The notes under the pieces: generated by a model
What the model saw: the letters and a program-made list of their open reading frames with translations, nothing else
Told to the model about the DNA's origin: nothing
Database searches by the model: none
Shown here: one piece after another, positions 51,505-62,675 of the stretch
Layout: every line of letters starts with the position of its first letter
How positions within the stretch are numbered: position 1 is the stretch's first letter
Assembly (NCBI GenBank): GCA_013416795.1
Contig: RQSC01001393.1
Coordinates: 1-64,000 of the forward strand
Length of the DNA stretch: 64,000 nt
From: Prasinococcaceae sp. CCMP 1430
Taxonomy: Eukaryota > Plantae > Prasinodermophyta
Direction of reading: 5' to 3'
Program-made: the position numbers and the translations under genes

Positions 51505-53580
51505 ATGGGCGTGGAGCTGGCCCCCCTCGTGGAGAAGCTCAATGGCATCCCGTTGTACGCCACGCCGCTGACGATGATCACCCTCAGCAACCGGTCGCCG
51601 GCCGAGCTGAAGCAGTTGACCAACGACGTGCTTGCCAAGGTGAGCGGCGAGCAGGCGGCCGATCTATCGCTCGAGGCCCCAGAGGTGACCAACGTGCGCA
51701 TGCTCGAATTTTTGCGCGTGTTGCGGTACAAACCGACGTGCAGCGGCGTGGCGTTCCGCCAGGGCGTCGCGCGCGGCGACCCGGAGGTGCTGTACCCGCT
51801 GCTCGCTTGGGCGGCGCCGCAGGTGCCCGCGCTCGCGGAGCGCGCGTACATCGCGCGGTACATGGTAGACGTCGAGGTGCCGGACGATTTTGCGCACGAC
51901 CCCGAGCTGGTCGCCGTGCAGCAGGGCATTGTCACCGCGCGTCAGGAGTTCGCCGCCCTGCACAAAACGGTCAAGGGGCTCAAGGCAGACGCCGCCGGCG
52001 AGGGCTCAGCGACCGAGGTGGCGGAGCGCATCACCGCCATGGAGGAGGACCGCGAGCAGCTCACCAACAAAATCGACCGCATGAAGGTCAAGATGGAATC
52101 CATCGCCGAGCACGTCGTGCTGCGCGAGGCTGCCGCGGCGCTGCGCAAGTCGCAGGACGAGGACGCAGACCTGCGCTCCAACATCGCCGAGCATCGCGCC
52201 GCGCTTGAGCTCACCGAGGCCAAGGTGGCGCGCGGCGCGCAGCGGTTGCGCGAGCTCCGCGCGCAGGGAAGCTCGGCGGCCGCATCAGACCCCGCGGCGC
52301 TCATCACTGCGCTCCAGGATGAAGTAGTTGCCAACAAGGCCGCCGCGAACGAGCGTCTGCCGCGCGTGGTCGCCGAGTTGCGCTCCAAGGCGGGCTCGCT
52401 CGAAGAGGCGCTCTCGGGGGCGGCAGTGTCTGAGGGCGAGCTGGCCGCGCTGCAGCGGCAGCTGGTGGATGCAAATGGCCGCCTCAACGAGGGCATGGCG
52501 GCGCGCGCCGCGCGGCAGAAAGCGCCCGAGGAGGGTATGCTGCGCCAGCAGCAGAGCATGGCAAACATGGTGACCAAGAAGCGCACTGCGGTCATGCAAC
52601 GCCTGACGCGGCTCGAGGAGGAGCGTGATAAGCTGCGCGCGGAGCTGGGAGATGCGGCGGGCGAGACACAGGAGCTGTTGGCATCGGGTACAGGCGACAG
52701 CGTCACCGCGTACGTCGCGCGCGTGCGCGAGCGAATGGAGGCGTACAATGCCATGCGCGCCGAACTCGACGGCCTGCGCACCGAGCAGGGCGTGCTGGCC
52801 TTCACAGAGAGCATGGTGGGTGAGCGCGAGGAGGCAATCCGCGCCGAGGTTGCCGAAATGGAAGCTGCCGCGGGCGTGGCTGGGTTCACCGACGCCGCCA
52901 ACACGCTGCAGCAGGTCTCAGAGGCCAAGTCGGGCGTGGACGCGCAGAAGGGCGAGGCGCTCGAGGAGATCTCGCGCATCATCGGCACCATCCAGGGTGA
53001 GATCAAGGAGCAAAAGTCGCGCCTCGCGCCACGCATCAAGGAGCTGCGCGCCGTGCGCCAGCAGTACCAGGAGCTTGAGCAGGAGCACGCGCAGCGCAAG
53101 AGGCGCTACGACGAGGAGGCAGCCGTGCACGAGAACGGGCGTGCCAAGGTTGCGTCGGACGTGCACCGCCTGCGCGAGGAGGTTGGACGCGACGAGAGCC
53201 GCTACCATTACTTGGGCGCCATGTCTGCCATCCTCGACGCGGACGTGCGCCGCATGGGTGAGGAGCGCCAGCGCGGCGCGGGATCCTCGACCGCCGAGGC
53301 TCTCAAGCGCCTCGTGGCGCTGCGAAAGGAGGACGAGCGCCGCACGCAGGAAGTCTTTGTGCGCGCGCAGGCAGCAGAGGGCTCGGGCGCGGGGCAGCGT
53401 GATGTCATCGCCGGCCTCACGCGGCTGGTGATGGCGAAGCTGGAGCTGTACCAGGGTCAAGGGCCGCACACCGCCAATGGTGGCATGCACGGCGGGTACG
53501 CTGACGCGGGCGGCATTGGCGCGTCGGTGTTGGAAGACGCCGAAGTCACGCTGGGCGGCGCGGAGAGGCTCGTGCTATGA
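51505..53580 (+). CDS. IFT81: Intraflagellar transport protein 81
   Basis: N-terminal CH domain (RMLEFLRVLRYKP...GDPEVLYPLLAW...LAERAYIARYMVDVEVP) followed by long coiled coils, about 690 aa. Confidence 0.9.
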   Translation: MGVELAPLVEKLNGIPLYATPLTMITLSNRSPAELKQLTNDVLAKVSGEQAADLSLEAPEVTNVRMLEFLRVLRYKPTCSGVAFRQGVARGDPEVLYPLLAWAAPQVPALAERAYIARYMVDVEVPDDFAHDPELVAVQQGIVTARQEFAALHKTVKGLKADAAGEGSATEVAERITAMEEDREQLTNKIDRMKVKMESIAEHVVLREAAAALRKSQDEDADLRSNIAEHRAALELTEAKVARGAQRLRELRAQGSSAAASDPAALITALQDEVVANKAAANERLPRVVAELRSKAGSLEEALSGAAVSEGELAALQRQLVDANGRLNEGMAARAARQKAPEEGMLRQQQSMANMVTKKRTAVMQRLTRLEEERDKLRAELGDAAGETQELLASGTGDSVTAYVARVRERMEAYNAMRAELDGLRTEQGVLAFTESMVGEREEAIRAEVAEMEAAAGVAGFTDAANTLQQVSEAKSGVDAQKGEALEEISRIIGTIQGEIKEQKSRLAPRIKELRAVRQQYQELEQEHAQRKRRYDEEAAVHENGRAKVASDVHRLREEVGRDESRYHYLGAMSAILDADVRRMGEERQRGAGSSTAEALKRLVALRKEDERRTQEVFVRAQAAEGSGAGQRDVIAGLTRLVMAKLELYQGQGPHTANGGMHGGYADAGGIGASVLEDAEVTLGGAERLVL

Positions 53581-59723: not shown

Positions 59724-60446
59724 CTGTCGGGGAGGCGGGTCTGGCAGTGTGTACGCTTGCTCGGTGGTTCCTTGTTTGACGGAGGATGGATGGCGCTGGC
59801 TGGCGCTGCGCGGGAGCCACCCCTGCGCAATCAATCGGATTCGGGATTCGAGTTCCTGTTCGGAACCGCACTTCGCTCGGCCCGCCCTTGTTTCAAGTCG
59901 TGTGGCTGGGTTTGTNNNNNNNNNNNNNNNNNNNNNNNNNNNNNNNNNNNNNNNNNNNNNNNNNNNNNNNNNNNNNNNNNNNNNNNNNNNNNNNNNNNNN
60001 NNNNNNNNNNNNNNNNNNNNNNNNNNNNNNNNNNNNNNNNNNNNNNNNNNNNNNNNNNNNNNNNNNNNNNNNNNNNNNNNNNNNNNNNNNNNNNNNNNNN
60101 NNNNNNNNNNNNNNNNNNNNNNNNNNNNNNNNNNNNNNNNNNNNNNNNNNNNNNNNNNNNNNNNNNNNNNNNNNNNNNNNNNNNNNNNNNNNNNNNNNNN
60201 NNNNNNNNNNNNNNNNNNNNNNNNNNNNNNNNNNNNNNNNNNNNNNNNNNNNNNNNNNNNNNNNNNNNNNNNNNNNNNNNNNNNNNNNNNNNNNNNNNNN
60301 NNNNNNNNNNNNNNNNNNNNNNNNNNNNNNNCGTTGCCAGCGACGCTGCGAGCCGGCGGCGGCGGGCGCCCCGCCGCGCCTGCGAGGGGGGCAGCTGCGC
60401 CAGGCCGCGTCGCCAGCGGCAGCCAGGCTGTCGCCGTGGTGACGCG

Positions 60447-61087
60447 ATGTCGACGCGCTACGTGACGAAGGCGGCCTTGGTGCGGGACCCGCTCGTGGCG
60501 CTGCGCCGGCGCGAGGGCGGAGTCGTTGGGCGAAAGGCGGCCGTGCTCGAGAGCGTGTACGGCATCACCAAACGACCGGGCATCGACCACGAACGCAGGC
60601 TGGCCGCACAGCTCGGGCTCGAGCATGCGGCGGTCAACCTGTGGTTCAGGAATCGCCGCGTGAGCGAGAAGCGCGCGGCGAGGAGACGATTGATGCTCTT
60701 GGGACTAGGTACGTGGGCGCACCTCTCGTGGCGCGATGAGCACCGGGGTGCGCATATCATTGGCGCGGCGAGTCGCGAGCTCGCCTGTGCATGTCCTGAC
60801 GACCTCATCCTCGCGATTCCACTTCGCACGCTCACGCGTGCTCGTCCACAGGCTTCCTCGTGATCCTCCTGGCGACAGGCATGCTCCTGTACATTCGCAC
60901 AGACGCCTTCGCTGGATGGGCCAAGTCATACCAAAAGGGCCGGCGCAGCCGCGCGGAGACGAGCGAGAAGGCAAATCGCAACAGTGGCGGCGCCAACGCA
61001 GCGGGCTATCACGCGCGTCGCCGCACACCGCGGCAGCGCGACTTCTCAGACGCGACGGGCGTGCAGGGTGGCAAGCCTAGGACCTGA
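60447..61087 (+). CDS. Homeodomain protein with a transmembrane helix immediately C-terminal to helix 3
   Basis: LESVYGITKRPGIDHERRLAAQLGLEHAAVNLWFRNRR. Intron 60709-60851 (GTACGT...CCACAG) completes LMLLGLGFLVILLATGMLLYI. The frame is open upstream to the gap. Confidence 0.75.
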
Positions 61088-61131
61088 GTGTACCGCCTTT
61101 GTAGCTGGTAGAATAGACTCTTTCATCACCG

Positions 61132-62228
61132 TTATCGCGCGCGCTGCATGCCTGCGCCAATGGCGCTGATCCCATACGCGAGTGCCGCCGCCGCGGCGCC
61201 AACACCGACGGACGAGAGCGCCGCTGTCGTTTTCGATTGGCCGAGAGAATGGCCACGAGCAGCGCCCAGCAGGCCGAGCACCGTACCTGTCATCATGGTA
61301 CCCACCGGGATGGCGAGGGAAGACGGCAGCGCGAGCACGGCCATGATGGGAACCGACCCGAAGATGGCATGGCCCGCGGCGGTGGACAACCCATCGACCA
61401 CGGGATTCTCGTCCTCGGTGGGCAAAATGCCCAGCTCCTCAACCATCACTACGAACAAAGTCGCCGAGGGCGCGCCAACGCGGAGAGCGCCGGGTCAGCT
61501 GAGGATACGGCAGGTCAAAGAACGCGGCTGCTGCAGGGCTGGAACGGCGTGGTGCGAGCGGGCCGGCGCACGCACTGTGATCGAGGAAGAACGACGGGTA
61601 CTTGGTCATCGTGCCAATTATCGTCTCTGCGTCGTTCTCCTTCATCCCCTTATTCACGTACAGCTCGATCATTTCCTCGCGCTCGCCCTCGGGAAAGTTT
61701 TTGAGCTCCCACGCTTCGCGCCTCCGCTCGAAGGCCTTGTGCTCCGCCTCTGCCTTGCTGCTGTTGTAGTCGCTCAACCCACTCGCGACGGACATCCCCC
61801 CGACACACGCCACGCCAATGCATCGTATGACAGGAGCGCTGAGCGCACAGCCTGAAGACGCTGCGAGCAGAGTCGCGGCAACCAGCGCGCCGTCGTTCCC
61901 ACCGAAGACTACTGACTTGACGAAGCCGGGAAGCGCGCTGCCGTGACCTGCCTCGCGTGACATGGCTGGCTTCGTGTGTGCCTTCTTCATGTCCTCGACA
62001 TCGCCTGCAGGTGCTCGCGACGGAAAGCGGCGCGGCGATGGCGCAGCAGCGCGAGAGGGCAGCCGTCAGAAACAGCGCCGACGGCTTTCCGGCCCTCAGG
62101 GCAAACGTGCTCTGCGGTGCGCCCGCGCTGGCTCCCAAAACCGCCGCGGTTGCGCGCGCACGCGCGCGCGCACCCTTCTCAAAGGCCACCTTGGCCGCGG
62201 ACAGGTCGCGGCACGCGAGGTCCGCCAT
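61132..62228 (-). CDS. VIT1: VIT1/CCC1 vacuolar iron transporter family
   Basis: Exons 62228-62174, 62004-61576 and 61448-61132. Motifs: VKSVVFGGNDG, MSVASGLSDY, ERRREAWELKNFPEGEREEMIELY, FLDHMMVEELG. Confidence 0.9.
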
Positions 62229-62675
62229 CGCCGCACGCCCCGCCGCAGCGCCTCGGGCGCGCACGCGCACGCGAAGGCACGCCGCCGCCCCCCCTGCTCC
62301 CGGCGCCGCGCGCGCGCTGTGGCGCCACGCCACGCGCCGTCCCCCCCCGCGAGCGACCCGAACCCTAAATCGCGGCAGTGCGCACCGATGGCAGGAGATG
62401 CGGGGGAACCCTCGGCGAAATTGCGCGAACAGCGAAAGCGCATGGAACAGACCCTGGACACGATCCCCTAACTCCGCGCGCGGCTCGTACCCTGCGAGTA
62501 ACCCTAACCGCGACCTCCCCGGGGAGGGCGATCAATCAAAGGTGCCGGCCGCGAGCGCAGCCGATGGTGCAGGCGGCGGGTGGGGTGGGGTGGGGGGTTG
62601 AAGGCTGCGGGGGGGAGGCGGTCGGCCGCGGCGTGGCGCGCGTGGGCGACTTGGTCGGCGCCACCGTGGGCGNGG

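Follow-up and report, generated by a model that had tools for sequence, protein, structure and literature searches.

A gene of two exons in Prasinococcaceae sp. CCMP 1430 very probably encodes a protein of 165 residues made up of an N-terminal helix, a homeodomain of canonical length, a basic linker of five residues, a membrane-spanning helix of 21 residues and a basic tail of 63 residues, and this protein is one of a family that is conserved among early-diverging marine green algae and uncharacterised so far. The gene was examined within a stretch of 64,000 nucleotides, positions 1 to 64,000 of contig RQSC01001393.1 (hereafter the window), whose G+C content is about 70% outside N-gaps.

RESULTS

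Gene structure

An ATG at 60447 (+) opens a frame of 87 codons, which constitutes exon 1. Splicing of 60447-60708 to 60852-61087 gives the 165-aa product, in which one hydrophobic segment only is found. The features of the locus are the following:

59916..60331, no strand: assembly gap of 416 N, which covers the promoter and the greater part of the 5' leader
60332..60446, + strand: 5' leader, open and in frame with the ATG, non-coding by composition
60447..60708, + strand: exon 1, with the start codon, N-terminal helix, homeodomain, basic linker and membrane helix residues 1-7
60501..60680, + strand: homeodomain positions 1-60 (protein residues 19-78), including W48 F49 R50 N51 R52 R53
60675..60689, + strand: basic linker AARRR (residues 77-81), between K57-R58 of the homeodomain and the membrane helix
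60690..60708, + strand: membrane helix, part 1 (residues 82-88, LMLLGLG), the final Gly codon being split by the intron
60709..60851, + strand: intron of 143 nt, GTACGT...CCACAG, phase 1
60861..60863, + strand: TGA that ends the 138-aa read-through product if the intron is retained
60852..60895, + strand: membrane helix, part 2 (rest of the Gly88 codon and residues 89-102, FLVILLATGMLLYI)
60896..61087, + strand: basic C-terminal tail of 63 residues (15 K/R versus 5 D/E), with the stop codon at 61085-61087

The intron starts at 60709 with the donor G/GTACGT, ends at 60851 with the acceptor CCACAG, and contains a possible branch site, CTCAC, about 20 nt from its 3' end. It divides the hydrophobic helix into 7 + 14 residues. 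Residues 82-102 form a run of 21 uncharged residues, with a Kyte-Doolittle mean of 2.6 over 19 residues. The spliced translation agrees with the preliminary description of this DNA, which had the linker SEKR-AARRR followed by a 21-residue hydrophobic helix assembled across the intron, and also with its prediction that retention of the intron leads to a stop at 60863 (TGA 60861-60863) and to a product without the helix; this product has 138 aa and no complete hydrophobic helix. In this genome, the membrane anchor exists only once the intron has been removed.

No second copy of this intron was detected within the window, nor any likeness to the intron of the relative described below, so that a repeated 'introner' element is not supported. 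Paralogues of the homeodomain gene were likewise not found within the window. As to the neighbouring genes, the VIT1 gene contains a comparable intron (GTGCGT...CGTAG, 127 nt), which speaks for the gene model as well, and the IFT81-like protein (51505-53577) is present letter for letter in an EukProt-derived entry of the protein collection.

Evidence for the gene model

Coding potential was scored with a log-odds model of codon usage trained on three long ORFs of the window. Exon 1 scores +0.33 per codon (GC3 0.85) and exon 2 +0.24, values which are positive in the predicted frames only, and the intron scores -0.12 in the frame of exon 1, with no GC3 excess.

A close relative is represented by marine metagenome contigs (L002-L007, 65% G+C), with fragments P0009 and P0010 being 72% identical over the first 50 aligned residues. 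Its single intron lies between homeodomain positions 37 and 38 (GTAAGA...CCTAG, 366 nt), and everything from helix 3 through the basic linker and the membrane helix (21 residues) to the tail is encoded without a break by its exon 2 (contig L006). The spliced model aligns with this relative over residues 52-127 (55% identity, E 1e-22), a region that takes in homeodomain helix 3, the linker, the membrane helix and the first 25 residues of the tail, without gap at the window junction. Moreover, the number of residues from K57-R58 to the conserved YIRT after the helix is equal in the two proteins. Comparison with the close relative strongly supports the exact splice junction.

Variation among strains was followed in ten same-species metagenome contigs (98.6-99.3% identical) which, together with the window, make 11 strains. 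Per 100 nt, the variable sites number 1.15 for exon 1 and 0.86 for exon 2, compared with 2.6 for the leader, 2.8 for the intron and 4.3 for the 3' flank. All three sites of exon 1 are synonymous; exon 2 has two, one synonymous and one Ala/Thr, which gives 4/5 synonymous for both exons together. In the intron, at least three of the four changes would alter the peptide of the retained frame. These counts are small, yet they agree in direction with the gene model.

In a collection of 15 billion proteins, spliced or transcript-derived products of the gene are absent, for the window species and the close relative alike. Entries corresponding to the gene are prokaryote-style ORF calls only, of 138 or 246-255 residues (metagenome read-through calls P0208-P0221), and word-indexed searches with exon 1 (candidate lengths of 76-241 aa and 138-439 aa) returned nothing, or the intron-read-through ORF only. 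The junction is upheld by comparison with the uninterrupted, gap-free relative, by codon bias and by strain variation. Since for this gene the collection holds prokaryote-style ORF calls alone, the gene is probably missing from the public annotation of this genome.

Start of the protein

A TARA metagenome contig (L001), 98.3% identical to the window over 60332-62275, adds 493 bases into the assembly gap. The true gap is larger than 493 nt, because these extra bases fall short of the pre-gap sequence of the window. The contig displays an AT-rich island, some 340-400 nt ahead of the ATG, then a GC-rich stretch without codon bias in any frame.

An Arg-rich frame upstream of the ATG had been proposed as a possible organelle presequence. 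However, the leader scores -0.48 in frame (114 bases before the ATG), with GC equal (~0.82) at the three codon positions, and the 339-nt upstream extension in the contig scores -0.28. Between strains, the leader differs by compensated, frame-shift-like changes. In the close relative, the start is at the equivalent Met, and 36 codons before it the frame is closed by a stop, no ATG intervening. Because of this lack of codon bias, the frame-shift-like strain differences and the upstream stop in the relative, we place the start of the protein at 60447 and consider the upstream frame as leader. An extension of the protein into the Arg-rich frame is ruled out on the same grounds, and the presequence proposal had to be abandoned.

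Identity of the homeodomain

PF00046 is the sole Pfam family in exon 1, where it scores 37.9 bits (E 1.6e-9; gathering score 22.9) with residues 32-76 covering profile positions 13-57; nothing was found by Pfam in exon 2. The homeodomain spacing with an unusual Arg at position 50, noticed in the preliminary description, is confirmed: L16, Y20, P26, L34, L38, L40, V45, W48, F49, R50, N51 and R53 are all present, at residues 34-71. The best sequence matches in the PDB are DUX4, HESX1, engrailed and other homeodomains. By its sequence, the domain is a genuine homeodomain and a member of the homeodomain superfamily.

Several described classes could be set aside. The three extra residues between helices 1 and 2 of the TALE superclass are missing, the spacing L16-Y20-P26-L34 being canonical. 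In the segment following the homeodomain, no heptad position is charged or polar, which excludes HD-ZIP. The PINTOX class is defined by N51D together with an upstream basic PINTOX domain of ~70 aa (PMC2775110); here position 51 is still Asn and there are just 18 residues ahead of the homeodomain. Finally, the protein is not a homeodomain ceramide synthase (CERS/Lass), having no TLC/Lag1 domain by Pfam and a single hydrophobic segment.

A conserved family

An exhaustive HMMER search with exon 1 over 1.84 billion representative proteins gave 222 matches at E <= 0.001. They comprise a self-match (P0001, a metagenome intron-read-through ORF), many multi-homeodomain proteins and a set of small single-homeodomain proteins, at 43-49% identity, in which a hydrophobic helix directly follows the homeodomain in every member. 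At least 12 further distinct proteins share this layout of homeodomain plus membrane helix, and homologues that keep both parts do therefore exist.

We compared 21 sequences from about a dozen distinct lineages. The linker after K57-R58 measures 4-7 residues. The uncharged segment extends over 19-25 residues, with a 19-residue hydropathy mean of 1.75-3.06, and is flanked by 7-9 K/R in the 15 residues before it and 0-8 in the 15 residues after it. Tails are between 19 and 236 residues long. Arg occupies position 50, with Lys in one lineage, and position 51 is N/S/H/Q/A.

Named members are Ostreococcus tauri XP_003084219.2, annotated as 'Homeobox domain', and a complete ORF of the Pterosperma sp. 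CCMP1384 transcriptome, the latter providing transcript-level support for the layout in a relative. The remaining members come from marine metagenomes; several of these lineages look like Mamiellophyceae, and one protein lies in a bin labelled 'bacterium' (MDA9098323.1). No family relatives were found in viral contigs. In a profile search with the family alignment, scoring covered the 8000 candidates that had the most words in common with it; ordinary homeodomains dominated, and only four proteins were returned, all of them already among the HMMER matches. The distribution of members suggests that the family spans Prasinodermophyta and Chlorophyta, and it may have originated at the base of green plants.

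The initial view of a membrane-tethered homeodomain protein holds as far as the layout is concerned, which is conserved in homologues, but the protein is not unique to this genome, as the O. tauri and Pterosperma members attest. That single-pass homeodomain proteins form an undescribed family is borne out: in the literature searched, we found no paper on the family, including by the O. tauri accessions, and none on a membrane-bound, membrane-anchored or transmembrane homeodomain protein of this type.

Predicted structure

Two relatives, P0040 and the Pterosperma protein P0054, were modelled by AlphaFold2 with the family alignment (mean pLDDT 80 and 83, respectively). Both models display an extra N-terminal helix, helices 1 and 2 of the homeodomain, then one unbroken helix. 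When compared with solved homeodomains by Foldseek, the P0040 model superimposes with an rmsd of 0.7-1.1 A over ~50 residues and a TM-score of 0.7-0.9 on target length. Helix 3, linker and membrane segment appear as a single helix (residues 87-131 in P0040, 75-130 in P0054) with block-mean pLDDT of 90-98 over most of its length, in models computed without a membrane and by a program that tends to fuse adjacent helices. A Gly at the helix boundary, frequently conserved, could act as a hinge.

DISCUSSION

Relation to known systems

The closest named protein, O. tauri XP_003084219.2 (A0A096PA34), shares with the window protein W-F-R at positions 48-50, K57-R58, a basic linker of five residues and an uncharged helix of 19 residues. 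The two are ~45% identical. The O. tauri protein differs by a Ser at position 51 and by a longer tail (118 aa) with SGLPRPY and RVR(K/Q) motifs, both missing from the window protein. For each of O. tauri and O. lucimarinus, Mukherjee et al. (2009) listed a single non-TALE homeobox gene as 'Uncharacterized', in an account whose passages on these genes do not mention a membrane helix (PMC2775110). Our guess is that the O. tauri gene of that list is XP_003084219.2. The sources on O. tauri homeobox genes that we consulted note neither a function nor a membrane helix for this protein.

NAC NTLs, bZIP17/28/60, ATF6 and SREBP also combine a cytosolic DNA-binding domain with a C-terminal membrane helix, and their activity is controlled by membrane attachment. 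They use other DNA-binding folds and long linkers containing cleavage sites, whereas in the present family a homeodomain places its recognition helix 4-7 residues from the bilayer. Control of the bZIP60 type relies on unconventional splicing of a stem-loop by IRE1, and so differs from the spliceosomal GT-AG intron of the window gene.

'HB-other' and 'HD-ZIP' entries figure in catalogues of plant membrane-bound factors predicted in silico, none of them being characterised there (PMC5694209), and a 2026 survey of conserved combinations of DNA-binding and membrane domains recovered only CERS2-6 for the homeodomain (PMC13294678). Schlank, a membrane-embedded ceramide synthase, binds promoters and regulates transcription through its homeodomain (bioRxiv 10.1101/2025.07.24.666377), and would by analogy constitute a precedent for a membrane protein regulating genes in this way. 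CERS2-6 and Schlank are, however, multi-pass enzymes with a TLC/Lag1 domain and a homeodomain located in a loop between helices; the window protein has one helix and no TLC domain, and is no enzyme.

Two further groups are instructive for activity at the membrane itself. Bqt4 of S. pombe, LAP2-beta and emerin have an N-terminal module that binds DNA or chromatin, a single C-terminal membrane helix and a small size, and can serve as a model for action in place. Their folds are unrelated (APSES-like, LEM) and, unlike members of the present family, they possess long disordered linkers. ToxR/CadC-type regulators bind DNA while spanning the membrane, with a cytoplasmic DNA-binding domain and a sensor tail on the opposite side; being prokaryotic, with a winged-helix domain and no nuclear envelope to reckon with, they provide an analogy only.

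Orientation and action in the membrane

The window protein has no N-terminal hydrophobic signal. Following the helix there are 63 residues in this protein, 47 in the close relative and 19-26 in P0040, P0046, P0052 and P0099; in several members, the number is no higher than 19-27, as in the tail-anchor type. Given the lack of a signal peptide, the positive-inside rule and the tail-anchor geometry of the short members, we infer that the homeodomain would face the cytosol or nucleoplasm and the tail the lumen.

As regards function, we lean tentatively, at a little under even confidence, to action in place at the ER or the inner nuclear membrane rather than to proteolytic release. After insertion into the ER, the protein would diffuse as far as the inner nuclear membrane and, being small and able to bind DNA, would be held there, in keeping with the diffusion-retention model established for small proteins of the ER membrane whose DNA-binding domain faces the nucleoplasm. 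Recognition helix, linker and membrane helix would form one rigid helix holding the bound DNA against the nuclear envelope; working in place, the protein would be either a regulator resident in the membrane or a tether for chromatin. Removal of the intron would then be constitutively required, and would not be the conserved control point.

One argument for action in place comes from the linker. Across very deep divergence its length stays at 4-7 residues, whereas tail length is unconstrained, and this suggests that the homeodomain works while coupled to the bilayer; such a constraint would not be expected if the anchor merely parks the protein. In addition, position 51, normally an invariant Asn, varies while Arg/Lys50 is kept, and this suggests that binding is atypical and less sequence-specific. 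On the other hand, by a geometric estimate only ~12 residues separate Asn51 from the hydrophobic core, so that the DNA would have to touch lipid head groups, which is sterically borderline. The basic tail (15 K/R) is unusual for a lumenal segment and could direct the protein to the outer membrane of an organelle. To our knowledge, all characterised eukaryotic membrane-bound transcription factors are released via cleavage or splicing, which also counts against action in place.

A more radical version, which we regard as possible but doubtful, is that of a eukaryotic 'membrane-integral' DNA binder, whose homeodomain never leaves the membrane. The recognition helix would be the cytoplasmic continuation of the membrane helix and would fasten DNA, specific or bulk, to the inner nuclear membrane, either as an ancestral chromatin-envelope link of the green lineage or as a ToxR-like one-component regulator reading the perinuclear/ER lumen through its tail.

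Alternative modes of action

Alternatively, the protein could be a latent factor, parked in the ER or another membrane, until a stimulus-driven intramembrane proteolysis of the signal-peptide-peptidase, site-2-protease or rhomboid type frees the homeodomain to the nucleus. We hold this to be conceivable, although improbable on balance. An N-in, type II or tail-anchor-like orientation is that of SPP and S2P substrates, most of the membrane helices contain small residues and Gly (the window protein has GLG and TG, P0040 has GG, and many others have a Gly at or near the start of the helix), and release by proteolysis is, as far as we know, the mode of all well-studied eukaryotic membrane-bound factors. 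Yet with a linker of 4-7 residues there is no room for a cleavage site beside the membrane, proteolysis does not explain why the linker is fixed in length, and the membrane helices contain no invariant helix-breaking residue. Sequestration in the ER would moreover be leaky, since a small DNA-binding protein of the ER membrane is not kept from chromatin.

Dependence of the anchor on one splicing event had led to the proposal that intron retention releases the protein. According to this scheme, regulated retention would yield a soluble, nuclear homeodomain isoform of 138 aa, and splicing the anchored one. Retention does remove two thirds of the helix, and the retained transcript is probably not a target of nonsense-mediated decay, because the TGA at 60861-60863 sits in the last exon. 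An independent intron that also separates homeodomain and helix is found in a second lineage (L017, 55.6% G+C; fragment P0059): it is a GT-AG intron of 241 nt in phase 0 at homeodomain position 64/65, five codons upstream of the position of the window intron. The spliced product of this lineage aligns gap-free with the intron-less P0057 through the helix and the SGLP motif. Thus 2/3 of the intron-bearing genes seen have their intron within a few codons of the helix start, for which chance would account in ~3% of cases by a rough, post-hoc estimate.

Against such a switch, no intron is found at this place in the 72%-identical relative, whose only one is inside the homeodomain, and other members are called as single ORFs without intron. 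Furthermore, the peptide of the retained frame shows three common amino-acid polymorphisms in 51 codons, compared with none in the 87 codons of exon 1. Since a single exon covers both homeodomain and helix in the close relative and in the Mamiellophyceae-like members, the family cannot have intron retention as its conserved mechanism of release. What stands of the proposal is that the anchor depends on splicing in this genome, with an independent intron nearby in the second lineage; a switch operating locally is unlikely.

Less probable still is a tether at the surface of an organelle, the helix and basic tail directing the protein to the mitochondrial or chloroplast outer membrane for retrograde signalling, or else import into the organelle by a presequence. 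The tail of the window protein is indeed strongly basic (15 K/R, 5 D/E), as in organelle-targeted tail-anchored proteins of plants. However, tail charge is not conserved (the P0046 tail is without K/R) and the hydrophobicity of the helix is high (2.6) and ER-like. The presequence version is contradicted by the non-coding upstream frame, its frame-shift-like strain changes and the stop in the relative.

Finally, a wrong gene model, or a soluble protein whose helix serves dimerisation like an HD-ZIP zipper, is very improbable and already largely refuted: the public protein set lacks the gene while containing the protein of a neighbour, and an assembly gap lies just upstream, but comparative, compositional and population evidence back the model, the transcript-derived Pterosperma protein shares the layout, and 19-25 consecutive uncharged residues without polar heptad in any member do not fit a soluble helix.

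Significance of the family

In the literature searched, we found no described homeodomain version of membrane-bound transcription factors, and we know of no eukaryotic factor whose recognition helix continues straight into the bilayer. Conservation of the layout in an undescribed family of early-branching marine green algae suggests a membrane-resident gene regulator. Members occur in the smallest of the free-living green eukaryotes, one of which, Ostreococcus tauri, is genetically tractable.

If the homeodomain is released, the family would add a new class to regulated intramembrane proteolysis. If, as we tentatively favour, it acts at the inner nuclear membrane, it would hint at how cells that have neither lamins nor LEM proteins attach chromatin to the envelope. 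In the event that the homeodomain never leaves the membrane, the family would fill the role of the LEM-domain proteins of animals and fungi, and this link between chromatin and envelope would date to the root of green plants.

Intron positions in other members of the homeodomain family

The closest relative and a further family member, both from metagenomes, were each found to carry an intron at a place of their own:

L006:5001-5825, homeodomain gene of the closest relative, marine metagenomes, 65% G+C (also on contigs L002-L005 and L007)
L017:645-1483, further family member, metagenome, 55.6% G+C

The sole intron of the closest relative (GTAAGA...CCTAG, 366 nt) lies within the homeodomain, at positions 37/38, and its removal gives a predicted product of 152 aa. 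Because this intron splits the homeodomain, gene callers have delivered only truncated fragments (P0009 and P0010). The gene neighbourhood on L006 is also unlike that of the window. In L017, a GT-AG intron of 241 nt in phase 0 falls at homeodomain position 64/65, precisely where the basic linker gives way to the membrane helix. The window intron is situated five codons downstream of that position, and the two introns are independent.

Genomic surroundings and representation in databases

The spliced product of window 60447-61087 is missing from a collection of 15 billion proteins, and the gene is probably absent from public annotation. The exact IFT81-like protein of the window is present in the same collection, with EukProt as its source. 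Another family member, P0162 (MDA9098323.1), was deposited as 'homeobox domain-containing protein [bacterium]'; most likely, its contig is algal and was wrongly assigned to a bacterial genome during metagenome binning.

Two other genes of the window are:

61132-61990, - strand, VIT1/CCC1 iron-transporter gene
51505-53577, + strand, IFT81 gene, intron-less (Pfam IFT81_CH, 81 bits)

The VIT1/CCC1 gene, which has one intron (61449-61575, 127 nt, GTGCGT...CGTAG), is convergent with the homeodomain gene, their stop codons being about 45 nt apart. The genome with this IFT81 gene has been ascribed to an alga that is described as lacking flagella; retained flagellar genes are already known from the Prasinoderma genome paper (PMC7455551).

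Upstream, the assembly gap at 59916-60331 is represented by 416 Ns. The 493 bases at L001:1-493, from a TARA contig, stop short of the pre-gap sequence, so the true gap must exceed 493 nt. The missing sequence includes an AT-rich island, which looks like the promoter region common to the homeodomain gene and the divergent glutaredoxin gene.

Homeodomain and tail signatures of the family

Position 50 is Arg (or Lys) in all family members. At position 51, where homeodomains in general almost always have Asn, the family shows five residues (N, S, H, Q, A). The best matches outside the family, P0002 (2210 aa, 8 matched stretches) and P0003 (1666 aa, 10 matched stretches), are of great length and resemble a homeodomain at many places along the chain.

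Beyond the helix, alignments A1 and A2 reveal a T(K/R)SG(L/M)PRPY tail motif common to P0055, P0057, P0079, P0118 and P0130, and an RVR(K/Q/Y) motif close to the C-terminus of the last four. Most of the longer Mamiellophyceae-like members carry both; Pterosperma P0054 retains the second as RVRKAD and the first as an RPY remnant. In these alignments the window protein and its closest relative lack both motifs, save for a faint R-x-R-A-E likeness about 20 residues past the helix. The tail motifs could mark a lumenal partner site.
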